Shown here piece by piece: positions 6,401 to 64,000 of a stretch of DNA of 64,000 bases. The stretch lies in contig NC_045707.1 in assembly GCF_009834535.1 (NCBI RefSeq), positions 17,112,001 to 17,176,000 on the forward strand, given 5' to 3'. The notes under the pieces were generated by a model. That model ran no database searches. It was not told the DNA's origin and saw only the letters and a program-made list of their open reading frames with translations. Both the position numbers and the translations under genes were made by a program. Position 1 is the first letter of the stretch, and the number at the start of each line of letters is the position of its first letter. Origin of the DNA: Camelus ferus (Eukaryota).

Positions 6401-9400
6401 AGAATCAGTTGTTTTTTCATGTGATGATATACCATGCATATATTTCCTTGTCTGTAAATACAGCTGTATCATCAGTTTTAAAGGCTGCAGAGGGTTCCAT
6501 TATAAGGTGGAATATGACATTTTACCCACCACTCATGATCGATCCCCTCACAAGAGACCTCACAGCCAGGAGCCACCACAGTTGACCACACTCTCTCACT
6601 TGTTTGTCTGCTGTGATCCTGCCAGACTCTTATTTGAGAAGTTGCTAACGGGCTCTTCCGGGAGCCAGGGCTGGGCGGAGCCATTTAACAGGTGCCTGGG
6701 CTGTGCCCCTTGCTGCCTGGGTACTCACTCGCACTCCGGCCTCATCTCCCTTTTTCTTGCTCTAGTGTGTGGGGAAGATCCTAGGATGGGAAGTGGGGGG
6801 TCCCAGGGTGGAAAGATCCCAGGGTGGGAACGGGAATGAGTTATGCCCCAGGTCCTGACATTCTGTTCTGTCCCTACAGGAGTTCAAAGAGCTGCAGTCC
6901 GAGATCTCAGACACGTCTGTGGTCCTGTCCATGGACAACAGCCGCTCCCTGGACCTGGACTGGCATCATTGCTGAGGTCAAGGCCCAGTATGAGGAGATC
7001 GCCAACCGCAGCCGGGCCGAGGCCGAGACCATGTACCAGACCAAGGTGTGCTGCCACTGGAGGAATATTTTCTCTTCCTGGCAGGGTCCTCAGTGGTGGC
7101 TTCCCTTACTCCTCACTCAGTCCCAAGCCTTCAGGGCCTGGGTCCCACTGTGCTGACAGGCACCAAGGGTTAAGTCTGTGGTGGTCTCCAGTGTCCTGGG
7201 AAGAAGAGGAGGCGAAGTCCAGGTCCCTGCCCAGGGAGAGTCCAGCCTGATGGGGTAGGGCAGGGCAGAGGAAATGCACATAGATTAATAATTATTGTAA
7301 CTAAAATTTGGCAAGTGTGCACAGTGCTAGGCAGTGTTTCAGATATTTTACCGGCACTGACTCATTTAACCCACACAACAGCCCTATTATGTGGGCACTA
7401 TTATTATCCCCCTTTTACAGATGAGGATACTGAAGCACCTCGAGGTTAAGTTATTTGTCTAACTCCACACAGCTAGTGAATGGAGGAGCAGGGACTGAAT
7501 CCTGGGTCCAAGGGCTCTGGACCAGGCAGGTTTAATCATTACATGCACCGTATGGGAGCAGGGCAGCTGATGGTGCAGGTGCTGGGGGAATGGGCAGCGG
7601 GGTGCTGGGGTAAACCAGTGTCCCGGGGGAGGAAGCCTGAGGGTTTAAAAGCAGCAGCAAAGGAATGTCTCTGCAGAGATAGGAAGTCATCCATGGTGCA
7701 GTGTGAGAACACACGTATGCCAATAAGGATACCCAGGTTTAGACTTTCTGTGTGACCTGCGGGCAGTCCTTTCCCTTCTCTGGGACTCATTCTCCTCATC
7801 TGTGAAATGGGTGGTGCTGATCAAGGGGTGAATAGGTGAGGATCTGAGACATCCAGTGACTCTCCAGCACTGGGACGTCATGGGCATGGGAAGAGCCCCG
7901 GGATCAATGGGGATGGGCCCGGGGAGTCATCCTTGTCCTTGTCGTGGCTGGGAGGAGACTGAAGCCCTGCCTCACCCCAATGTCCAAGAGTCCAGCCTCC
8001 TGGCATCGGGCAAAGCTTGCTAGGAGTCAGAGTGTCCCTCCCTGGGAAGATAAGCTTGGAGGGCTTGTCACTCAGAACCCGGGGCCTTCTTTGGGTGGGG
8101 AGAAGACGAGTCACCTGTAATCATGACCACCCCCGCCATCCTTCTCTGTGTGGCCTCTCCAGTTTGAGACCCTTCAGGCCCAGGCTGGGAAGCACGGGGA
8201 TGAACTTCGGAATACCCGAAATGAGATTGCGGAGATGAACCGGGCCGTCCAGAGGCTGCAGGCGGAGATCGACAGCATCAAGAACCAGGTGGGCCCCAGC
8301 CCTCCTCCCTGAGGCATGTGAAGGGCAGCCAGCTGAGGCCAAGCTCAGGATGAGGAGCCAAAGGCTAGGGGCGAGGGTGTCAGCCCTGTCCCTACGGCCC
8401 TGGAGGCAGAGGCTGGTGCAGCTCAAGTCTCTCTGGCCCACGTGTGAGCTCCCCAGGACAAAACGTTCCTGGCCAGGTCCTGGCTTGACCGAAGGGAGGA
8501 TAGGGGTCCTAGCTGGGCCTACAGCCTATGGAGGAAGCCTCAGGCTGGCTAGCCAGAGCCACCATTTGTTACCACACTGATACTGGGCCCTCTTCATGCA
8601 CCTAGCTCTGGGTGCCATCCAGTGTCCCTAGAAGCGGGGGGCCGGAGGCAGCAGAGTCCCTCACTGTGGCTCGCAAGGCCCTGTCCCATCCACTGACCTC
8701 ACTCCCCACCGCTCCCTCTCCCGCTGTGCTCTTGCTGCTTCCTGTATCTTCCATTTGCCAAGCATCTTCATGCTTCAGGGCCTCGGCACGCGGTGTTCCT
8801 GTCACCTGGAATGTGATTCTCCCAGCTCCGTACGTGGCTACCCTCTTCTCCCCCCTGGGCTTTAGGACAGAAGACCTCTTCTCAGGGATCTCTCTCAGCA
8901 GTCTGTATGAGGTTCCCTGAAACACTCACTACTCTCTGAAATTTTCTGTCTTATTGACTACTGACTTACTAGGTAAGTCTTACTAATTAAGTATAAATAA
9001 GTATTGTCCCCCACCTCCACTGGAATATTAAAAATGCCTTAAGAGCAGGGACCCTGCTTCTGTCTGGTTCACTGCTCCTCCCTGCCCAGCACCTCACTCA
9101 TGGTCGGGGCACAGGTTTCAGATAACAGACTGATGGGAGGATGTGCTGTGAAGCTGGGGTGGGGCACATTGATGAGGAAGGGTCCCCCAAGCCCTGGCCA
9201 AGGCATGGGGGTGGGAGGGCAGCGAAGCCAGAGCAGGGGTCTGCAGCGGGGAGGGAGAGAAGCCGATGGGTGCAGCAGCTTCAGAGGGCTAACTCTCAGG
9301 TGAGCCAGAGCCTGGGAGGTGGGGGTGATCTACCCAGAAGTGTCCTCCCCTTGGAGTCCGGCAGGCCTGTTTACATGAGGGGGAGGGCAGAGGCTGCCTC

Positions 9401-12400
9401 CTGGCATAGATGCAGGGCCATGAATCACCGGTGCAGCGAGCCCAGCGTCCAGGCCAGGAGGGGAGGCACAGAATAATAAATGACCATTTCCCAAATCCCT
9501 TGTCACATCTGGTTCTCCTCTCCCCATGCCAAGGCAGAGCCACACCCTGGAGCTGGGGGAGTCTACCACCATCAAGGGGCTCAGAGGCAGTGGGATGGCC
9601 CTGCCAAGGGGGCAAGAGTGTGACAGGGAAGGGCACCGACCAGTGGATGGGGGCAGAGGGCATCAGCCAGCCTCCTGGGGAGGATTGGGGGTGTTGGCAG
9701 CGAGGCAGAGTGCATGCACTGAGAGGAAAGGATCTGAGGGCAGAGGACAGTCATGAGAAGGAAGGAGGAGGAGCGCTGGGCTTGGGGATGGGGATGGTGG
9801 CCCTCTGAGCTGAACAAGAGGCCACCCAGGACTGGACAGGCTCTTCTAGTGGGGGACGGGCCACAGGAGAGGGAATAGTAAGGCGTGGCAGGAAGCTGCA
9901 GCTGCGGCTCAAGTCCGTTGAGCATCATACCACCCCTGTCCAAACCTGGGGGACTATTGATCTGGGGTGTGACGGTTTCAAGCAGTGTCTCTATGCTCCA
10001 AGTCTCCCTGTTCTGGGCATGTTCCAAACTGGTTCCTGTTTTGAAGGTATTTTTGGTTCCGGTCAGCTACCTGAAATTTGGGGGCTAAATTAGGATCCCA
10101 TAGACTTGGAGCTTCTCCAGCTAGGGGTTAAGGGTAGTGGGCATTTGTAAATCATAATAGCATTTATTTATAACAGTGATCATAATAGTGTTTATTAAAC
10201 ACTTACTGTATGTTAGACACTGTGCGAGGCCTTGTATATTATCTCATTTAATACTTTGCAGTATCCCTGTGAGGTAGAAACTGTGATTACTGCTATTTCA
10301 GAAAAGAGGAGACTGGCTTAGAAGGGTTGATTCTAAGATCACATGGCTTGTAAGTTGCAGAGCCAGAGTTGGAACCTAGGCATTAGATATCAAAACCCAT
10401 GTCTTAAATCCTTAGGATTCCATGGTGCTTGGGGGAGTGGGCTGGTGCCAGTGAAGCCACTGTAAGCAAGTTGCCCACATGCTGACTGCAGGATGGGGAG
10501 GCAGGAAGGCCGTGACTGGCGAGGCCTGCCCCCTAGCTCACAGCTCCACTTCCGCCCACAGCGTGCCAAGTTGGAGGCTGCCATCGCTGAGGCTGAGGAG
10601 CGTGGGGAGCTGGCACTCAAGGATGCACGCGCCAAGCAGAAAGAGCTGGAGGCTGCCCTGCAACAAGCCAAGCAGGACATGGCCCGGCAGCTCCGGGAGT
10701 ACCAGGAGCTGATGAATATCAAGCTGGCCCTGGACATCGAGATCGCCACCTACCGCAAGCTGCTGGAGGGCGAGGAGAGCAGGTGAGGACACAGAAGCTG
10801 GGCAGGGGATCCCTCTGGGGCTCAGTAGGGCCTGGGGCTTAACATCCCTCCATCTGCAAGCATTTCCTGCGTACACTCTTCGGCAGGGCACTGGGAGTGG
10901 GAGGTGTAGGGAGGGAACAGATGATGTTTGCTTATTGCCCTGGATGAGATGACTATTTAGATGGAAAGACCATATGGTGTAAAGCTTGGTGGGCGGGAAA
11001 GTTGAGGGGATAACAGCGCTTTTGGTGTGTGTGGCCATTAGCAGGGTCATCTTATCTGATCCTCAGAACACATTCAGGTGAGCAAGTCAGGTATTCCTGA
11101 GTCCCTAGTTTACAGAAGGAAAACTGGTTAGTTTTATTAATTGAGGGGACAGGGCCAGTGTGCGGTCAAGCTCTGCTGATTCCTGGTTCTAGTGGCGTCA
11201 GGCTGCTTCTCACTACATGACTGAGTGCTAAGTCCCGTGGTATTGCCCTATCCTGGTGGAGAGGTGAATTTCCCCCTGTCCCTAGAGAGATCTGCATATT
11301 CACCTGAAGCCTGAGACAAGGCTGGACTGGGCTAGTCTTACAGGAAATTTTTCATGAGAGCCATGGAACCTCTGAAGTTGGGTCTTCATACTTACTGTGA
11401 TTGGTTGGTTGACTCATTTGGTCAACAGACAAGGGGCCTGGAAGCTTCCTAGCATCCCCATCTCTTGCCCTTAGTTTTTCTCCGCCCCTTTCCTGGACTT
11501 AGGGCTGCTGGAGACAACTGGACTTCCCTCCCTCCCTCTGCTAAATGGAGATCCTCCTTTACCCCTCTGCAGAGTAAACGCATCTGGAAGGTCGAGGGCT
11601 TGGTGTCAATGGGGCTGTGAGTCAAAAAGCAAATGTATCCAGCTGTCTGGAGTGGATTTTTAATTTCCAGTGCAAGACTTGTTTCAGCCCCACAGGCTGC
11701 TGAAAGCCACTCCACCTCCCTCCCCTTCTCTCCTCAGTCCAGGCTGGAGCTGAATTCACTCAATCAACAATTCACTAATTATTTCCACACACATTAAGTA
11801 ATTCCTGTGTGCCAGACCTCATGCTAGGGACTGGAGATGCAGGAATCAATAAGCTACAGCCTACTTTGAGAATTTTATGGTCCAATCAGGGGAGGCAGCC
11901 ATCCACATAAACAATGAAGGTGGCTGCTGTTGACCAACTCCTGAGTGCCAGGGCTTTAGGTAAGTTATGTTATTTAACCATCACAAACAACCCTGTGAGG
12001 TCAGTACTGAGTTAGGTGAGGAAATGGAGGCTCCGAGACACTCCCCAGGTCATGTAGCCAGTAGGCAGGAGGGCCGAAGTGAACCCCCCTCCCTACTCCT
12101 CACTCATTTTGTAACAAGGCTGAAGGAAGGCTGGGCGTGTGGAGACAAAGCAAAGGAGCATCAGTGCTGCCTGAGGCCTGGACAGAGGGGTGTGGGAGTT
12201 CTTCCAGTGCTGAGGCCCTCACAGGTCTTTCCTCTGCCCCCAGGTTGACCGGAGATGGAGTGGGAGCCGTGAACATCTGTAAGTTCTTGGCTGTGGGCCC
12301 GTCCCCTCTGCTGTGCAGACTAGGCTGGGTCTGTAGGATGGCACATTGGCCTGAGGGCCTGGCCTTGTGGCGGCCGGGAGCCTCCTTCCCTTTGACAGTT

Positions 12401-15706: not shown

Positions 15707-15863
15707 NNNNNNNNNNNNNNNNNNNNNNNNNNNNNNNNNNNNNNNNNNNNNNNNNNNNNNNNNNNNNNNNNNNNNNNNNNNNNNNNNNNNNNNNNNNNNN
15801 NNNNNNNNNNNNNNNNNNNNNNNNNNNNNNNNNNNNNNNNNNNNNNNNNNNNNNNNNNNNNNN
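15707..15863. other. N run (157 nt) over KRT87-like exon 7 and its donor
   Basis: Directly visible. Confidence 0.97.
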
Positions 15864-26067: not shown

Positions 26068-31428
<5,361 letters not shown>

Positions 31429-31814
31429 GCTGGCAGGACTGGCGGAAGCACCCAAGCCCCTAGCCCATCTCACCCTCTTCGCGGATCCTGGCTGGCCTGT
31501 CTGCCCAGCTCTACCTTGTGCAGCCTGGTGGTGGGGTGCAATGGCTTGATCTTCTCCGGACCCATCTTCCCTACTGTTCACTTCTCATTTCTTGTTGTGT
31601 GGGAGGCCCCCTCTTTGTCTCCTGCCTCCCTCAGGTTGAAAAATGCCTTTAGGAGGAGTGAAACATGGATGTATTCTGTTTGAAGATTCTGGACTGCTCA
31701 AGCCCATGAAGAGGACAGCACCCCCGGTCCCCATCGCAACCTTCCTTTCCCTTGCATTCTTGTGCTTTCCTTCCTCTCCCAATGATTCTGTTCCTCCTTG
31801 CTGTCTGTGCTTCA

Positions 31815-31820
31815 AATAAA
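31815..31820 (+). terminator. Polyadenylation signal of the gene at 26068-31428
   Basis: AATAAA about 390 nt after the TAA; context ctgtgcttcaAATAAA resembles the KRT81 3' end. Confidence 0.75.
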
Positions 31821-33286
31821 GTCACCTAGTTTGCATCACACATGTGCATTTTTCTGTCTGTGATTTCAGGCCCCAAGGGGGTGGGTGGGATCACAACCGG
31901 GTAGGAACTCATCCTGGCGGGGGCTGCTGCCAGGGCTTTGCCAGCTGTTTATTCAGTTGTGTGCTCAGGGCTGGGGACATTGAGGAGGGCTGCTCTGATG
32001 GCTCAGGGCTCCTGGGGTAATTCTCCAGTGCTGGGAAGTGTCTGGCACAGTGTGGGCTCGTAGCAGACACTGAGCAATGTTAAGAGAATGAATGAATTCA
32101 CCTCTAAGGTCCTAACTGCCCCACAGGGCATCTCCACTTGAATGTTGCAGTGAGATTTGGAGTTCAAAGGCCTTAAAGACACCTCATCACTTCCCCCTCT
32201 ACTGATGCCCGTGCATTAACTTTTCTTCTTTCCATCAGTTCTTCCTACTATCTCCAGCTTAAAACTCTTCAGTACCTAATTTCCTGACCAGTTGAACCAC
32301 CAAACTTGTCAATTTTTTCTTTGAAAAACACCACGAGGAAATTATTTTCTTATAATACGTTAGACTAGGAACTCTGAAAAACCCTTTTGTTATTAAAGTT
32401 CTGGTTAACATTCTTGAAAAATATATTTGAATGCATCACGAGCCAGCAAGAAGGTATAGGAGACAATGAGAGGTGGAAAACAGTACGAAAGCATGCCTCA
32501 GGGAAGTACGTGAATGATGGAGCCAGGTGGCACGGTGGGGGCATTTGTCAGTCGCTGGTGGTGTGGAAAGGAAGCCTGCTGTGGTCAGGGGACAAAGCAT
32601 GAAGCCTAGGTCTGTGAAAGGGAGACTTGGATCCTATGTCCCTAACAGACAACTGGGACGATCCTCAGTGAAAGAGGAAGCAGGAAAAGCACTGCAAAGG
32701 GAAAGGAAGGAAACCTGCAAGCCTTGACCTTGGCTTTGGGTAAAGGGGAAATAAGTTTCCCCTGATAATTTTAAACCCCAAGTTTACCCTCATAAAGTTC
32801 TGGGCTGGAGTTCACATTTTCTTTTTTTCTGTAGCAAAACCCCACAATACCCAATGTGAGAACATAGTTTAAAATCAGCCCAGTTTGGTGATGCTCCCCT
32901 AAATCTGGCAAAAAGCAAATACAAATTCTCTCTAGAAGAATCTCATTAAAACCTAGGCTTCCAGGAATTCTCCCAGAGAGTGTTTCAACAGATGCAAGCT
33001 CACAGTTAAACAAAAATCATGAAATGTGAGCCAAAATGCCACCATAAGTGGAGATGAGCAGAAGTATTCCACACCAGAATCATCCCCAGGAGGACTGCAG
33101 ATGCTGGAATTAACTAGAGTCAGAAAAAAAAAAAAAAGAAAAGAGTATATTTCATATGTTTAAAAAAAGAGGGTACTAAAATGTAACTTAAGAATAAGAG
33201 CTTTTAGAAAATTAATAGACTTATTTGAAAAAGGATCAAATAGATTTATAGAAACGTAAACTGTAACAATTATATTAAAACTTAGT

Positions 33287-33404
33287 GGGGGGAGGGTATA
33301 ACTTAGTGGTAGTGTTGTGCTTAGCATGCTGACGTCCTGGATTCAATCCCCAGTATCTCTATTAAAAAAAAGAAATAAATCTAATTATCTCTCCCCCCCC
33401 AAAA
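33287..33404 (+). mobile_element. tRNA-derived SINE (camelid type)
   Basis: GGGGGGAGGGTATAACTTAGTGG (A box)..GCTTAGCATGC..GGATTCAATCCCCAGTA (B box), A-rich stretch, AATAAATCTAATTATCTC tail. Confidence 0.8.
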
Positions 33405-33667: not shown

Positions 33668-33741
33668 GAGGGTGGGTAAGAGCTCAGTGGTAGAGCACTG
33701 TTTAAAAAACAAAAAAACAAAAAACAAAACAAACAAAAAAA
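33668..33741 (+). mobile_element. Truncated SINE head of the same family plus A-rich tail
   Basis: GAGGGTGGGTAAGAGCTCAGTGGTAGAGCAC followed by (CAAAA)n-like sequence. Confidence 0.6.
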
Positions 33742-34500: not shown

Positions 34501-36206
34501 AAAGAAATGCTGATCAGCTTGCGTTCTCTGGTCCCTGATACTCCTTCAGTTTAGAGTCTTGTCTTACCCCCAGCTTCCTACCTAGTCTTGGAAGTGGAAC
34601 CCCAGACTCAGTCTCTCTCCCTCCTATCTTCCACACTGCTACCAGACAAGCCTTCCTAAATTGTGTTGTGCACCAGGCTGCTGGCCTGCTCAAGTGCCTT
34701 CTATGGCTCCCTATTGCTCACTCCATAAGCCCAAACTCCTCAGCTCCACATATTTCCCCAACCTAAAAGAGCCTTCCTTCCCCCTCCTCCTATTCCTCTT
34801 TCTTTCAAGGCCTTTTCCAGCCCAGAAACCACCACTTTCCCATCTGGGCTCACAGAATGGCCCCTTCTGCCCCCTCTCAGAACTCTGCAGTTGTAACAAG
34901 GTGAGGTCACAAAGCCCCCAGGAAGGAGAGGCCTTGTCCTCAGAGGTGAGCATTCTGGGAACTTCTTGGGCTGGAGCTGAGCTTCAGTGCTCATGGGAGG
35001 CTTGGAGGAGACGGCAGCTCTGTTCATCATGGTGAGAACTCTCCACATGGTTCACTGGCTCCCATGGGGTGATGGGCCTCGGACTCCACCCAGATCTGTG
35101 GGACCTAGCCAGGACAAGCTTGTCTACTGTGTCTCCAGCTTTCAGGAATGGGAGCAGGAAAGGGTGGGCAGTAGGAATAAAGCAGGGACTGGTGGGAGAT
35201 GATGTTTTGCCATCTCTTTATATTCATCCCTCCACACCCTATCTGCCTTGGAAGGAAATTTGCACTGGGTTGATGAGAACAGTTCTTCTCTGGGTTAATG
35301 CGGGTGTGTGACTATCTGTCCCTCTGGGTATAGAGCCAAGTGCACGGGCTTAAGATGAAGCCTGGCTCGGCCATTGAATGGCAGGGCCACTCATGTCCCT
35401 CTGGATCCCTGCTTCCCTGCACGGTGGATATAATGAGCATCAGGTTGCCCAGTAACATCTCCCTGGTCCGCTTCACAGGTGGTCGTGAGCCTGGGTGAGG
35501 TGGTGGAGGCATAAGACTTTGGTGAGTGAAAGCATCTCTTGCTGTGCTTGGCTGGTTATGTGTCGGTGTGGGCAGAACCGGTGCAGGAAGGGAAAAGGCC
35601 CACTGATTTTGCCCCTTGTGGACAGCACTTCCCAGAGAGCCCTTGGGTTTGGGGAAGGAGCTGGAATCTGGATCTCTTGTCACTGAGAGCATTCATCAAG
35701 TTAGGGAAATTTCTTCATATTCTTAGATTTTTAAAAAGCATTTTTGAAATGAGGAAGTATTATTGAGTTTTATTAAATGCCTTTTGTATTCATTTAAATG
35801 ATTCTATGCAAAGAAGGATGATAATTCATTTCGTAGAGGTAACTACCCCTATTCCTGGGATAAACCCTGGGTGATCTCAGTCCAAAGACTCGACAGATTG
35901 CTACCCTGAATTTTTTCCCTTTGTGCCTGAGTTCACGCTACCTTCAACATCTCCACCTGTGGTGGTGCACCCGCCACTCGGCCAGCCAAGTGCATTTCGT
36001 TCTCTCAATGGCCCTTGGAGACAGGAAAGATGATCATCCCCATCTTACAGATGGAGAAACAGGCCCATAGAAGTTAAATGATCCACCCACAATTGAAACT
36101 GGATGGGTGGGCACTGAACTGTCTCTCTGGCCTCAGTCGAGGACCCTTGCTGCCCTCCTCATCTCCCTGATCCTCCCCCTGGACTCTGCTAACCCTTACT
36201 CCGCAG

Positions 36207-39200
36207 TGTGGTAAGATAAAGGCAACGGTGCAGAAACACATGCAGAGCCAGAGGCGCAGCAAGGAGGAGCTGAACAGGCTTAACCAGGCCATCCGGAGGC
36301 TGACTGTGGAGGTGGGCAGCACCAAGAGTCAGGTGAAGTGTGGGCGTGGGCGCTGCCGAGTGGTGATGGTGGGAGGGGGTCCACTATTTAGAACGACTAG
36401 ACTGGATCTTCCCCCATCCTTTGGAATAGATGGATAGTTTCTCTTTGTGAATGTCTGAGCAAACAGGGGTGTGGCTGTATGTGTACATCATGCTTACATT
36501 TGCCCAGGACTCTCTGTATTTCATGTGCGTAAGTAATTAACATGTAGGTAAATATCTCTGAATATGTACGCCTGTTTGTATACTGTTTTTTATGGGTACG
36601 CACATTTCCATGCTGTAGGTTTTGTTCTACACAACATGAAATTTGAGCCCATCTTCAGAAATGGCAAGATTTTATGTAGCAATCCAGTTTTCTGGGTTCT
36701 GTCCAAAAATGTGCTGACCTGACAATATTAACTTATGATCTGACATGGTAATATTTGGTAAGAGAAGAGAGGCCTCTGTCTTCTCTGTTGTCTCCATATG
36801 GGGACATGCTCCTCTTTTTTTTTTTTTTTTTTTTTTTTGGGACATGCTCCTCTTGTGTGCCACAGTCCCCGACACTCCAAATTGCATCCTTTGACACCAA
36901 GGCAGAGGGTTCTTTGCCATTTACGATCACCTTGGTTAGTACTCTTGTGATCCTTGTAAAAGAGAGATGGTGCTGGGCCTGTGTCTCTATCTAAGGTAGA
37001 GACATACAGGACTGAATACATGAGAGAGGTCCAGGTGATTTCAGGAAAATGAGAACGTGCACCTTTCTTCGTGGAACTGGATACTGTAGATGGCTAGTCC
37101 ACATTTGATCTTTACTTTCTGATGCCTCCAGCCAGACTCTGCAGACATTCGTGTTTGTGACTCGGGCTTTAGGTCTTAGAAGAGGTTCCAGCATGAATGC
37201 TTTCTTTTTCCCGAACTCTCTCCCTCTCAACCTCCTCTCTCTTCTCCCAGCTGCCCTCTCTGTTAAGCCTCCAGACCCACGCTCCATCCTGCAGAGGGAA
37301 GGGGCTCTGTTCTTGTTTTCTGCAGATACCAGTGTCCCGGGCTCTGCGGGATATTCGTGGGGGTTCTCCCTTCTCCAGGAACCCAGGCCTTTGAGGAGGG
37401 ATGAACTGTCCAGGTTCCAGGGGGTGGCAGAGTGAGCGGGTAGGCCCGCTGTGGTTCAGTCTCCCAGCCTCCCCAGCTGCTCTGATTCCTGGACTGGTTT
37501 CCTCAGCAGCAAGCACACCTCACCAAGACAAGCGTTTATCATCATTCTCCCCCAGAGACAGCAAATTCTAGTCTCTTGTGAGGAAAGGATATTCTTCCTG
37601 TTAGTCTCCCTGATGAAACAATAATCCCAGCATGACATGCTGAAAAACATTGGATGCTTCCTGGAAATGTCACCAATACTCTTTGGAAAAGGTTCTCTCT
37701 CAGCCCCCCCAGAGGGCTGGCCCCCAACCTGCAATCTGGGAGAGTGGCAGACACACAAGTGTGTATTTCAGAACAGGCACACTGACTCCTCACAATGGTT
37801 TCTAATCCCTCATTGGCCCCTCAGCCTCTGAGAAAGGTCTGGATCCTTGAGGGGGGCAGGGGGAGGCCAAGGATGTCCTTTTGTCTTTGGTCTTCCCTTC
37901 ACCCCCAGCCCTGCGAACCAGGCAAGGACCCAGTAGCTCTGCAGGAGGAGGGTGCCTCAGGCAGCGCCAAGGGCAAGGTGGCCTGGCTGGAGGCTGCCCT
38001 GCAGCGGGCCAAGCAGGACATGGTGCAGCAGCTGCGGGAGTACCAGGAGCTCATGATTGCCAAGCTGGGCCTGGATTTTGAGATCGCCACCTACCGCAAG
38101 CTGCTGGAGGGCGAGGAGAGCCGGTGAGGGCTGGGCGGTGCTTCAGGTGTTGGTGGTGAGGGAGGCTGGGGCACAGAGAGGGCACCACCTGAGGCCTTGC
38201 CAGCTGGGGAGAGGGGAGGAGGGGTGATCTGGGTATCCAGGGATCTGTTCTTCTGGAGTAAATTTTTTCCCCCACTGTCTTACAGTCCTTTAGACAAAAG
38301 GCCTTAGCTATTAAGCACCTTTGGCACCTGGGATGGGGCAACTTATGAAGTCATTCACTCCTTAGGATCAGAGAGCAGTGGCCAGTTTGTCAGTTGAGAC
38401 AGTTGCAAGGACCAAGGCCCAGCCAGGAGGAGGAAGGTCCCCCAGTGTGGGGTGCCTTCTCCTCAACTCTGCCCCTCTCCACCTGGGAGAGGCCTGGGTG
38501 AGGCAGGGTTTGTGGTAACAGGTAGCTCCTGGTTTTAAACCTTAGACAGCAGTAGGGACCTAGGGGCTGCCAGCTCCAATTGGGCCCACCTGGCTGAGGG
38601 GAAGGAAGGGAAACTCACCATGCAACAGACGTGCTGAATTTATTGCCTCCTCTAAACTCTACAAAACCCTGGGAGGAAGGTGCTATTATTCCCATTTTAC
38701 AGATGAGGAAACTGAGTCTTAGAGAGTAAAGGACTGCCTCAAGGACACACAGGTAGAAAGTGATTGGGTGAGGCTTCAACAATAGGCTTCAGAATAATGT
38801 ACCTAGCTCCTCTGTGATCTCCTTCAAAATGACCCCCTCATGGTCTCTAATTTCAAGATAAGTTTAGACCAAAGACAGTGTAGATGTTCTGTCTTCTCCT
38901 TTCTCCAAGAATCCATCCATAAAAGTGAATTATTTGAATTTAAGGCAGGCAGGATTGAGTTTAAAAGTCCAGAGGTAGTTTTTACTCGAAAGGGCTGAGA
39001 GGACCTGAGACAACCAAGCAGCTTGCAGAATGGAAGGATTTCCTCCTGTCTGGAGAGGGCCAGGAGTGTTTTGTCTTGGAGAATGGAGAATATTCGGCCT
39101 GGTAGGTAGATTCACTCACCTGCTTCCTCCTTCTCCCTGCAGGCTTGGTCTGGGATTTGGAGCAGGGAGCGTCAGTAAGTAAATAATAGTTGTAACTTGG

Positions 39201-39893
39201 GTTAGGAGGGTCAAATCTTATCCCCCGCCCCGCTCTTCCTTTGTGTGTATCCTCTTGGGAAGGGAGAAGGGGTCTGCTTCTTCTGGATGTCTCCCATTTG
39301 TGGGGGAGGCTGTTTCTTCTCTTGGGGGTGATTTTTTGTGTTTGTGTGTATTGTGGGAGGGGGTTCTGTGGTCTGTTCTTTGAAGGGAGGATCTGTTGGT
39401 GTGTCCTGGGGTGTGGGAGGAAGTTCTGCGGGTTTATGCTCATGGAAGAGGCTGTTTCATTCCCTCTTTGGGGAGCATCTGTGTCTAACTTCAGGGAAGG
39501 GGGATTCCTGAGTCTGTTTCTTGGGAGTAGGGGTCTGTGTATCTGTCACTCTGGGGAGTCTGCACGCCTGTCTCCTGGTGGGGAGGAGGGCCTGTGCATC
39601 CGTATGTCTGTCGTCGGAGGCGGCGCGGGCAAATGTGGGGAGAAGCGTTTCCTCCTCCGACAGCCGCTCTCCGCTCAGCCCTGGGCAGCGCTCCCCACTG
39701 CGGGCCGGGCTCCGCCGCGGACCCCGCGGGCCTGCTGCCGCCTGGAGCGGGCCCGGCGCCCTGGAGACGAGCGCCCCTGGCGGCGGCTGCGCGCTCTGCG
39801 GCTCCCCCGGCTGTGTCGGGGGCTTCAGCAGCAGAGGCTGCCGCGGATGCTGAACCTTTCCTCATCTGCTCCGGAGAAGTAAAGGAACCCTAG
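36207..39893 (+). CDS. KRT88: Orphan keratin cassette with only exons 6-9 (coil 2B + tail), tentatively KRT88-like; truncated gene, alternative 3' half or relic
   Basis: Exons: 36207-36332 (126 nt, [42 protein letters not shown]), 37909-38123 (215 nt, ends [15 protein letters not shown]), 39143-39174 (32 nt, [10 protein letters not shown]), 39664-39893. All GT-AG with type II keratin phases. No exons 1-5 found between 31428 and 36207. The name rests on synteny (between KRT87 and KRT81, + strand) and recollection of a short mouse Krt88, unverified. Confidence 0.65.
36801..36854 (-). mobile_element. Poly(A)-only retroinsertion with 16-bp target-site duplication
   Basis: GGGACATGCTCCTCTT at 36801-36816 and 36839-36854 flanking a pure T run. 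Confidence 0.75.
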
Positions 39894-40142
39894 CTTTTGC
39901 CCCAAAGTCTTGGCCCTGTGTCTCAGACGCCCCCTCCCATGGTGCTGGCCCTCTCCTCACCTCTCCCTCTTGCCCTCCGACCCCGGTGCGTGAAGTCTTG
40001 GAATGTAGTTCACCGGACCACGGCGGACCTGCCCCCGGTGCAGAAGCTGTGCGCCTGGGCTTAGCTTACCAGGCTCACCAGGACCCAGCACCCCCACCCT
40101 CTGAATCGCCCCATTCCCTTTTTCCCGGGACTCCTCTATTGC

Positions 40143-40148
40143 AATAAA
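40143..40148 (+). terminator. Polyadenylation signal of the exon 6-9 cassette
   Basis: AATAAA about 250 nt after the stop. Confidence 0.7.
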
Positions 40149-41883
40149 AAGTTCTTCAGTGCACTACACCGTGGGCTGTTTGTGCCTGACTTCCTCGGGC
40201 TACTTATTCCCAAAGCAAAGACAAAGCTGGCCGGATTTGGGGGCAGGTAAAGAAAAGGGGGAACAAGAACAGGAAGCAACCCTCCTCATGTGGTGGGTGG
40301 GTCTGCATGACTTCAGTGTACGGTGGTGTCATAGCACCAGGATCTTCAGGGTTGGAGGGATGTGTGTGTCAGAGGGCCTGGGGTGAGAGGGAAATGAGGG
40401 GGGTTAATTCTTGCAGGGTGTTGGCTTCCTTCCCAGTCTGGGGTCCACAGGCAGCCGTTCTTGGTAGAGTTGCTGAGAACTGCATTTATTCATCGACTCA
40501 CTCGCTCTGCAAACACTTACAGAATGGCCTCTAAGGGTCCGGCATAGTGTTTGGTCGACAGGACACTAGTCCTGGCCCTCTGGAGATGATGGTCTGGCAG
40601 GGAAGCAGTCTGTAAACCAGGAAATGGACCAGAAAGAAGCTCAGATGGGGATGAAGGCGAGCCTCCTTCTACTGCCCTGGCAGGGGCAGTCGGGGACAGG
40701 CCCCGGGGAAGATGGCCCTCGTAGACTGAGGCTGGAGGACGTGAACACAATTGGGTGGCCCAGGTCCGGGTTTTAGTTGAACAAGGGATCTGATGGTGGC
40801 TGGGAAAAACATACTATGGCGGAGGAAAGCATGGGCTTTGGAATCAGAGGAAGTTCCAGCTCTGCTTTGACTTCCAGGTCTATGGTGTAGTTTAGTCTGA
40901 GTTTTCACAAGGCAACTGGACTTTGGTGTCAGAAGGTAGGCCAGCTTAGGGGGTGGGATGGCCAGAGAGAGGCTGGGTTTTTGTGCTCTTTACTTGCCAT
41001 CCAGGCCTGAGAGAAGCCTTGGTTCAGCAAGCTCACTTTCTTTTCTGTTGCACAAAGCATTACATCAGCGAGCCATCTGGGGAACAATAGTCCCTGCTTT
41101 CTATGTCCCTGGGTGGGGCTAAGGTGTGTCATTGGCCAGAGGCACCAGCTTTACCTTTTAAGGTTCGCTAGTGCCAGGGTGTCTGCTGTGTTCTCTTGGA
41201 TCCCTGCCCAGAGAACAGGTGTCCAAAAGGGCCCCTTCCTGGATAAACAGAGCAGTCTCATGCCAGAGGAATGGGACAGAAGCTTGACTGGCAAGCTGCC
41301 ACCTACCTGAGGGGCAGGGGACAGGGCCTTACTGGACTCATGCATCAGCCCCATTCGATCTATTCAGACTGACACTGGTTGCATAAACATTCTTATCAAC
41401 ACCCCCAATGCAAGGCAGCTGCCTAAAAGCAGAGCTGCTTCTCTGCAAGATTTTTCAGACTCCATGCTCCCCGCATTTAGCTAGGAGGTAATGACATTCT
41501 GTGATATTCAAGGTCAGGTTTTTCCAGCTCCTGCTGGGCTGATCATGTCAGTAAAGGAACTCTGTGAGAAGTGCAGAAGCTCCTCCCACCCAGGAGCTGT
41601 AGGCAGGACTGATGGTGAGCAGCCGGCAGCCCGTATCACCGAGCACTGGTTGTTGCCCGCATGTTTCCTTTCCAAATCCCAAATCTGATGTCAGCCAGGG
41701 CGCTCCCAAGGGCCGTGGGATCAGGCTTTAGTCTCTGGCTGGGCCAGGGCCACGTGGGCCATTAGCAAGGTTTGTGGCTTGGGGCCCAATCTTTGGAGTG
41801 GCTCCCCTGGTCCTGGGCCACATTCCAGGCTGGGAAATTTCTGGAGAGTCAGTCACCAGCCCATTTATAAGCTTTGAGAGTCA

Positions 41884-45481: not shown

Positions 45482-50557
<5,076 letters not shown>

Positions 50558-58784: not shown

Positions 58785-62881
<4,097 letters not shown>

Positions 62882-64000
62882 NNNNNNNNNNNNNNNNNNN
62901 NTCTATCCCATCCCTCCTTGGGTCTCAGAGTGCCGTGTCCCTCACATTCCTGGTATCACTTGACTTTTGTTTCCAAACCTCCCCATCCTGTAACTGGACA
63001 GGTAATTTGAGTACATGCTTTGGGTATGTTTCTATCCCCATGGGACTCTCTCATTCATCTAGGTGCTGACCTGGGATTGGTCCCTTTAGCAGATGTGTTC
63101 CTCAGAGCATGGAATCAAGGCCATAGTAATCGCTGCTGTGGAAAGCCTGGTCTGGGCTCAGGGCCACCTTCCCTGAAAAGAATTTCTTCCCTTTGGGCCC
63201 TCATTGCACAGCCCTCTCAGGATTTCAGCTCTCTTCTCAAGCCTGGCCCTGACTCCAATTGTTGGAGTTTAGGTTTATCCCCAAATGATAGCTTCAATAA
63301 GGGCTTTTTATCAATATACACATATATATTCTAACTACAGTGAGTGCCCCAAAGTGGTCTTCCATTGCAGCAGGGAGGACTAAGGCTAGACAGCAGTGAC
63401 TGGTCCTTTGAGGCAGCTATGACCTGCTCTGGGCATTTTTGATTGTTGCTTGTTGCTTGTTTTGGGGGAAGGGGGAGGCCCCTTGGTCATTCAGGCTTCC
63501 TGTGGCTAGAGGGCAGCTGAACAGCTCCTGTGAGGACAACAGTTCCAGAATGTTGCCCATTGGCTCTTTCCCCAGGTTAGTCAGGTGCTCACAGTCTGAG
63601 TCTTCCTCTTCTCGTGCACACCAGGCCCCTGGCCCTGGGCAGGGCAGAGTGGAGGGTGAGGATGCAGAGGGAGCATCCTGTGTTTTGGGGAGACGGAATC
63701 AAGGTGATCCCATGGTGAGACTCGCAACAAACTGAAGTAACTGCATTGGAGAGCTCAGAGGCACTGGGGAGTGTCATTAGTGAAGAATTCTGGGGGGAAG
63801 TTTTTTCAAGACTCTGTTTGGACATTGGAGAGGCATGTGGAGATAGCATTAAGAAAGGAGTGGCCCTCCCCTCTGCCACAAAGTGTTCTTAGGGTGAACT
63901 CAGAAACTTTGGTGTGGGTTCCCTAAGAAACCTGGGCATGGGATGGCAGACGGTGGGCTGCAGATTCTCCTTATTTCTGCAGCTGATTTTGACAACCTTT

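Follow-up and report, generated by a model that had tools for sequence, protein, structure and literature searches.

Can a keratin gene persist with only the last third of its rod, and if so, what might such a gene do? Keratins are obligate filament builders, and to our knowledge all 54 functional human keratins have a full rod. The question is raised by a 64,000-nucleotide (nt) stretch of the Camelus ferus genome (contig NC_045707.1, positions 17,112,001 to 17,176,000, forward strand; hereafter the window, to which all positions refer unless stated otherwise), in which an earlier reading made from the letters alone, the sequence-only reading, had noticed homologs of type II keratin exons 6 to 9 at 36207-40148 with no exons 1 to 5 before them. 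Our analysis indicates that this cassette is very probably the camel ortholog of KRT88 (mouse Krt88), an independently transcribed, truncated keratin that is under purifying selection and that we propose as a modulator of filament assembly.

The identity of the locus is established by comparison with proteins of other placental mammals. A protein search with the open reading frame (ORF) of the exon 7 homolog returned 593 matches, the best 120 of which are short predicted proteins of 64-198 amino acids (aa), 71-100% identical over essentially the whole exon, including its first third, an odd stretch that is proline-containing and unlike any ordinary keratin. Where the source is named, these best 120 span nearly every placental order: camelids, perissodactyls, ruminants, pig, carnivores, bats and eulipotyphlans, together with rodents, rabbit, tree shrew, primates, xenarthrans and afrotherians. 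Across these orders, the predicted short orthologs measure 110-250 aa. Marsupial or monotreme names were absent among the best-scoring clusters that we looked up, which is weak negative evidence. A 181-aa Camelus ferus protein is 100% identical to exon 7, and rodent proteins named 'Keratin 88' are 76% identical to it. The mouse ortholog, NP_079763.1 / Q9CPR6 ('Keratin 88', 171 aa), for which a BC-derived protein record also exists, bears out the earlier statement that mouse Krt88 is a similarly short ORF. A 224-aa Physeter match was rejected as KRT88, being a truncated hair keratin of the KRT81/86 type, and a KRT88-like model of the humpback whale (Megaptera) lacks the exon 6 part; cetaceans have lost most hair keratins. 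The 217-aa RefSeq models of C. bactrianus and C. dromedarius could be reproduced letter for letter from window coordinates with the splice 34993-35031, 36207-36311, 37909-38123, 39143-39174 and 39620 onwards. Together with the Krt88 matches, this reproduction means that the locus is already annotated and is not a new one.

By its conserved borders, camel KRT88 is a gene of five predicted exons, namely an untranslated exon that donates only the ATG, followed by homologs of keratin exons 6 to 9. The sequence-only reading had missed the dedicated first exon. Exon 1 (34931..35031, plus strand) is a 5' untranslated region ending in the ATG at 35029-35031 and followed by the donor GTGAGA; it emerged from an alignment of eight species (camel, horse, mouse, cattle, manatee, wolf, a bat and hedgehog), which are the species compared throughout, and its start is inferred from dog exon 1. 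With a slash marking the exon border, its end reads CATCATG/GTGAG or CATCATG/GTAAG in camel, horse, cattle, manatee, wolf, bat and hedgehog and TACCATG/GTGAGG in mouse, ATG/GT being present in all eight. The annotated ATG of horse, mouse and wolf lies 1.2-2.6 kb upstream with GT immediately after it, and in most orthologous proteins the Met leads directly into the first residue of the exon 6 homolog. An in-frame upstream ATG at 34993, from which the camel RefSeq models start, is specific to camel. The 189-aa ORF that had been proposed to begin at an ATG at 36240 does exist, but its start is wrong, the conserved ATG being the one on the separate first exon.

A putative core-promoter block at 34878..34928 (plus strand) is near-invariant in the same alignment and covers -53 to -3 from the dog-derived start site. 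Because the 82-nt dog exon 1, which was defined by RNA-seq curation (Balmer 2017), maps there, the camel start site would lie near 34931, directly after this block. About 27 nt before the inferred start, the block holds GGTGAGGTCACAAAG, which is CRE (cAMP response element)-like and includes a nuclear-receptor half-site, AGGTCA, at 34904. The presence of GGTGAGGTCACAAAG might explain tissue-specific, possibly gonadal, expression.

Exon 2 (36207..36332, plus strand), the homolog of type II keratin exon 6, has 126 nt, phase 0 and the borders cag/TGT...CAG/gtgaag. Its acceptor is canonical in seven of the eight species; the hedgehog site is apparently an AG that lies 6 nt further downstream. An in-frame alternative donor after 36311, 21 nt from the distal one, yields a 105-nt exon; this proximal site, GAG/GTGG, is kept in six of the eight species and is the sole usable one in mouse, bat and hedgehog having no GT there, and every species retains at least one usable donor. 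Exon 3 (37909..38123, plus strand; cag/CCC...CCG/gtgagg), the exon 7 homolog, encodes a linker, the C-terminal 2B helix and the helix-termination motif, and its acceptors and donors are canonical in all eight. Exon 4 (39143..39174, plus strand; 32 nt; cag/GCT...TCA/gtaagt), the exon 8 homolog, has borders conserved as cag/GCTTGG...GTCA/gtaagt in seven of the eight; for hedgehog the automatic extraction chose a wrong site, and the true exon is seen at L007:8345-8380. Exon 5 (39664..40165, plus strand), the exon 9 homolog, has conserved acceptors at 39664 and 39679, a RefSeq acceptor at 39620 and an AATAAA at 40143-40148. Its coding part has a GC content of 0.75 and a CpG observed-to-expected ratio of 0.90. 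The AATAAA follows exon 7 by 2020 nt in camel and by 2021 nt in horse, and all eight species have a single AATAAA 1.8-2.4 kb past exon 7. All camel splice sites are intact and the frame is open through the helix-termination motif, so that four exons with GT-AG borders, an open frame to this motif, a CpG-rich last exon and its AATAAA, all as first described, were confirmed. Sizes of 126, 215 and 32 nt had been called canonical; the sizes themselves hold, but a canonical exon 7 has 221 nt, the size in most species, and the 215 nt in camel reflect an in-frame 6-nt deletion in the linker, shared by alpaca as judged from its protein.

The position of the gene agrees with this assignment. It lies in the type II cluster between KRT7/KRT87-like and KRT81/KRT86, with keratin-homologous exon borders in canonical phases. 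In the window it is a plus-strand gene located downstream of a KRT87-like gene, with the 3' end of KRT81 after it. The mini-gene is likewise placed after the 483-aa keratin and before KRT81 in horse, and after a Krt87-like and before a Krt81-like gene in mouse, where no full-length keratin gene stands between the Krt87-like gene and Krt88. Like the camel gene, mouse Krt88 lies between a KRT87-like gene and KRT81 and has five exons, the first ending in ATG; it shares with camel and the predicted placental orthologs a Trp in the LAWLEAAL stretch, the LDFEIATY sequence and a linker that starts with Pro-Cys-Glu. The camel gene differs from mouse Krt88 and the other orthologs in a 12-aa N-terminal extension from the upstream ATG, a linker shorter by 2 aa, and a frame-shifted tail without the cysteine-rich end. 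Dog KRT88 (LOC608165) has five exons of 82/105/221/32/431 nt and introns of 1559/1494/950/447 nt (Balmer 2017, PMC5573215), closely matched in camel by exons of ~101, 105 or 126, 215, 32 and ~500 nt and introns of ~1.18, 1.58, 1.02 and 0.49 kb.

The nomenclature of this region appears to be confounded. Balmer et al. (PMC5573215) equated dog KRT88 with a 483-aa, nine-exon horse 'KRT88', which ends 6.8 kb upstream of the 193-aa horse mini-gene. The camel window, like horse, holds both loci, a full-length keratin at 26.07-31.82 kb and the mini-gene at 34.9-40.2 kb, and the camel hair keratin at 26068-31820 matches the position of the 483-aa horse 'KRT88'. These data suggest that the name KRT88 covers two adjacent, different loci, the 483-aa gene in horse and the mini-gene in dog and mouse. 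The horse mini-gene may be identical with the equine five-exon LOC102149928 ("KRT129P"), for which dog and human are said to have no ortholog, and human KRT88P at chr12:52263781-52268497 could, by its distance from KRT87P, match either of the two loci. In the searchable literature, Krt88/KRT88 is no more than an entry in gene lists or a gene suspected of being mis-annotated, and its truncated, conserved nature is undescribed in the papers that we found.

How did the gene come to lack its 5' half? As the sequence-only reading had stated, the upstream interval at 31.8-36.2 kb is filled with L1-like AT-rich sequence and tRNA-derived short interspersed nuclear elements (SINEs), and it contains no exons 1 to 5: tblastn searches found no remnants of these exons there or upstream of the gene in the seven other species. 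The queries were the ORFs of four neighbouring hair keratin genes (E<0.01), KRT7 and a full-length bat hair keratin. Since no species retains such remnants and mouse lacks the upstream gene, the truncation is ancestral to at least Boreoeutheria and one afrotherian. On this comparison, the truncated structure is not attributable to the L1 and SINE insertions seen in camel.

The remaining exons may be of mixed ancestry. The exon 6 homolog is 50-52% identical in protein to exon 6 of the neighbouring hair keratins and 33% identical to that of KRT7, and the cysteine-rich tail is also hair-keratin-like. In every species checked, the last 139 nt of KRT88 exon 7 are 83-89% identical to KRT7, compared with 80-82% to horse KRT81; within the window, 37986-38123 and KRT7 exon 7 at 10645-10782 share ~88.9% DNA identity. 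It is therefore possible that KRT88 is an ancient chimera or the product of a conversion, with a hair-like exon 6 and a KRT7-like end of exon 7. A recent gene conversion from KRT7 was rejected, since all orthologs are 83-89% identical to camel KRT7 and the likeness is not specific to camel; because this closeness is common to every species, any chimerism would be ancient and not a camel event.

An ancient truncated gene may be either maintained or slowly lost, and the coding sequence speaks for maintenance. In all eight species, which span the deepest placental split sampled (Afrotheria vs Boreoeutheria), the homologs of keratin exons 6-8 have open frames. For exons 6-7, the median pairwise ratio of nonsynonymous to synonymous substitution rates (dN/dS, omega; NG86 method) is 0.29, and a GY codon model on the species tree gives an omega of 0.28, which is far from 1 and is strongly preferred over omega = 1 (log-likelihood, lnL, -1500.7; 2ΔlnL = 78.1, 1 degree of freedom). 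Constraint is separately significant in the exon 6 homolog (omega 0.39, 2ΔlnL 16.4), in the novel linker half of exon 7 (omega 0.38, 2ΔlnL 13.1) and in the C-terminal helix (omega 0.15, 2ΔlnL 48.9). As the linker and many exon 6 residues are specific to KRT88, this constraint cannot stem from gene conversion by paralogs. In the cysteine-rich frame of the conserved tail end, variable sites number 11/9/18 at codon positions 1/2/3, a pattern consistent with coding and not significant alone. The comparison shows the truncated architecture in Boreoeutheria and one afrotherian, where the codon estimates indicate purifying selection. The sequence-only reading had proposed a conserved truncated keratin and had named stops in the orthologs with dN/dS near 1, or the discovery of exons 1 to 5 of its own, as what would speak otherwise; none of these was seen, and the proposal stands.

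The tail of the protein has a different history in camelids. Here the gene is intact through exon 4, but a 1-nt deletion has cost it the conserved cysteine-rich C-terminus. In the eight-species nucleotide alignment of the last exon, this deletion, between 39751 and 39752, is found in camel only. From the acceptors at 39664 or 39679, the camel frame leaves the cysteine-rich end, passes the ancestral TGA at 39851-39853 and stops at the TAG at 39891-39893, the stop of the 189-aa ORF described earlier, whose tail frame is thus shifted and not ancestral; an alternative stop in use is the TAA at 39880-39882. The DNA for the C-terminus Gly-Gly-Gly-Cys-Ala-Leu-Cys ... Cys, which is conserved from manatee to mouse, is present in camel but out of frame. 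Acceptors that would restore the cysteine-rich frame were not adopted, being only weak sites 130-150 nt upstream of the conserved ones. Since the alpaca model shares the shifted reading, the lesion probably predates the camel-llama split; camel and alpaca differ at 6 of 113 rod and exon 8 residues. Wolf, too, has a shortened tail and hedgehog a frame-shifted one; for this reason we consider the tail the least constrained part of the protein and seemingly dispensable.

The predicted product of ~170-215 aa consists of the last ~115 residues of a keratin rod (coil 2B) and a short tail. Its Pfam Filament match is limited to profile positions 199-313 of 313, well short of a complete rod of ~310 residues; a head domain (Keratin_2_head) has no Pfam match, and the protein starts one residue before the exon 6 homolog. 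Its layout is a helix, a proline/glycine-rich linker of ~24 residues, and a second helix ending in the helix-termination motif. AlphaFold2, run with 42 orthologs, predicts a helix at residues 4-40, a low-confidence linker at 41-64, a very confident helix at 65-117 and, at low confidence, a disordered tail. The termination motif is present at the end of coil 2B with surrounding residues invariant in the 42 orthologs, and our reading of the alignments puts the heptad core positions of the two helices in nearly invariant columns. Residues specific to KRT88 and invariant in it are the Trp in LAWLEAAL, the Phe in LDFEIATY and an Ile for the usual Asn in LMI(V)KL, and because of them the C-terminal helix is more hydrophobic than in ordinary keratins.

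Comparison with known keratins places these features in context. Residues 3-114 of horse KRT88 align gaplessly to the whole K5 chain of the 2B fragment in the K5/K14 crystal structure 3TNU (E = 7e-27), and the protein also aligns to K1 2B (4ZRY). Unlike the K5 fragment, KRT88 is a natural gene product with a helix interrupted in the middle, and its pairing with a type I partner is only putative. With KRT81, KRT86 and KRT7 it shares exon sizes, exon phases and the helix-termination motif, whereas it lacks their head, coil 1A/1B, linker L12 and initiation motif, and in place of the first 25 residues of exon 7 it has a proline-containing segment for which no helix is predicted.

This architecture suggests a role that does not involve building filaments. 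KRT88 would keep the heptad cores of both helices together with the motif that drives end-to-end rod contacts, and would most likely engage a type I keratin at its 2B end, or else the ends of filaments. It would be unable to elongate, having no coil 1A or head contacts to contribute, and may, as a soluble protein, modulate or cap keratin assembly, probably in tissues other than skin. We favour a modulator or cap without elongation because the head, coil 1 and the initiation motif are missing while the 2B end is kept. Synthetic rod-end consensus peptides and N-terminally deleted keratins reportedly disrupt filaments. A more specific version, which we put forward as a tentative possibility, gives KRT88 a physiological role as a regulator acting in trans. 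By binding type I keratins, or other intermediate filament proteins, at the 2B end, it would cap filaments or dissolve them in one particular cell type, perhaps of the testis; the gene would have been kept for ~100 million years in placentals and then lost in the anthropoid/human lineage.

What is seen of expression is modest. Dog skin RNA-seq gives low-coverage support for a five-exon KRT88 transcript beginning at the ATG/GT exon (Balmer 2017, PMC5573215), and Krt88 is not expressed in mouse ear skin (PMC12941220). Logan contigs from a vole-like rodent were rejected as evidence of expression, as they contain introns and are genomic or unspliced. If mouse 1700011A15Rik, the subject of testis and Leydig-cell reports, is Krt88, the gene may be expressed in the gonad.

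Several observations weigh against a conserved, functional modulator. The camel tail is frame-shifted, and the openness of all three frames has led to three conflicting camelid database models (181, 184 and 217 aa), with different frames and acceptors. By a three-point distance estimate, omega on the camel branch is ~0.43 (dN 0.049 / dS 0.114), compared with ~0.18 in cattle, which suggests some relaxation, not neutrality. Anthropoid models, those of Piliocolobus and Saimiri, share replacements at residues that are invariant or nearly so in 42 other placentals, namely Cys for Arg in LREYQ, Arg for Leu in KLGLD and, within the YRKLL of the termination motif, His for Arg. These replacements would fit relaxed constraint before the human gene became a pseudogene, and since the human locus is classed as a pseudogene, KRT88 is dispensable in some lineages. 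Dog KRT88 was itself suspected by Balmer et al. (PMC5573215) to be a mis-annotation or a pseudogene, and the hints of expression come from dog and mouse only. The capping mechanism, in turn, is drawn from the logic of the domains and from published experiments with peptides and deleted keratins.

These points invite other explanations. If the cassette were a non-functional, unprocessed pseudogene, a hair-keratin 3' half left by partial duplication or deletion, whose open frame would reflect nothing more than a high GC content and recent origin or slow decay, the last exon with its three frames open for more than 80 codons (39500-39900), the camelid tail frameshift, the name KRT88P of the human counterpart, the very low coverage in dog skin and the changes in the termination motif of anthropoid models would all be expected. 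Yet such a relic should not yield an omega of 0.28 with a likelihood-ratio statistic of 78, significant also in the part unlike any other keratin, nor exons 6-8 that are open in eight species over the Afrotheria/Boreoeutheria split, nor a conserved first exon, ATG/GT junction, promoter block and poly(A) signal. The splice sites are intact, the tail frameshift in camel is the sole lesion, and the mouse protein is listed in RefSeq under an NP accession and also in a BC-derived record; we consider this explanation very unlikely. Still less probable is that the cassette serves as an alternative, mutually exclusive 3' half of the upstream hair keratin (26.07-31.82 kb), which would skip its own exons 6-9. 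The two are on the same strand, 4.4 kb apart and phase-compatible at the exon 5/6 junction, and in Saimiri a Gnomon model runs from decayed keratin exons upstream into those of KRT88. The upstream gene, however, has its own exons 6-9, stop and AATAAA (at ~31815), mouse has kept Krt88 with an ATG exon of its own in spite of lacking that gene, and the ATG/GT first exon and promoter block are conserved in all eight species, with the curated dog transcript starting there. Both of these explanations are poorly supported.

A gene that is functional in most placentals may instead be turning into a pseudogene specifically in camelids. The loss of a cysteine-rich C-terminus otherwise conserved from manatee to mouse, the additional 6-nt deletion in the linker, several camelid-specific replacements and the raised omega on the camel branch are what such decay would produce. 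However, exons 1-4 and all their splice sites are intact, the tail seems dispensable given its state in wolf and hedgehog, only 6 of 113 rod and exon 8 residues separate camel from alpaca, and an omega of 0.43 is still below 1. We therefore regard decay in camelids as unlikely, and retain as the best account of the locus a truncated keratin gene, KRT88, that is conserved in camel as in other placentals.

The surroundings of KRT88 were mapped by similarity search inside the window. KRT7 lies on the plus strand (exon 6 at 8172, exon 7 at 10607-10782) and is followed by a KRT87-like hair keratin on the minus strand (exon 6 at 16788-16663). A second, intact hair keratin of nine exons (26068-31820, plus strand; exon 6 at 29325-29444, tail end at 31428, AATAAA near 31815) adjoins the mini-gene on its upstream side. 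Beyond KRT88 lie KRT81 on the minus strand (exon 6 at 46875-46750) and KRT86 on the plus strand (exon 6 at 62283-62408). The window also contains six runs of N, of 129-191 nt, at 15707-15863, 26317-26445, 29792-29959, 46265-46447, 50213-50341 and 62711-62901; several sit where exon 7 of a hair keratin is expected, which makes a comparison of exon 7 with paralogs in the window impossible.

Mobile elements mark the locus as well. Between the two keratin genes, copies of a tRNA-derived SINE, which we take to be of a camelid/cetartiodactyl type, stand at 33285-33375 and 33670-33700 within the L1-like AT-rich DNA. MIR-like fragments at 36020-36090 and 38650-38750, flanking KRT88 exon 2 and within intron 3, respectively, also match copies near KRT7. 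In intron 2, at 36795-36860, a run of ~26 T lies between perfect 16-nt direct repeats (GGGACATGCTCCTCTT), an arrangement that looks like a poly(A)-only retroposition with its target-site duplication.

In summary, KRT88 is an already annotated, functionally unexplored gene, an overlooked but testable oddity in a very well-studied family. For the camel genome, the practical outcome is a corrected gene model and the description of a lineage-specific frameshift in the tail. More broadly, a gene for only the last third of a keratin rod would be nature's equivalent of the dominant-negative fragments engineered in laboratories, and KRT88 would suggest a level of filament control that has gone unstudied, or else a keratin fragment that works outside filaments.

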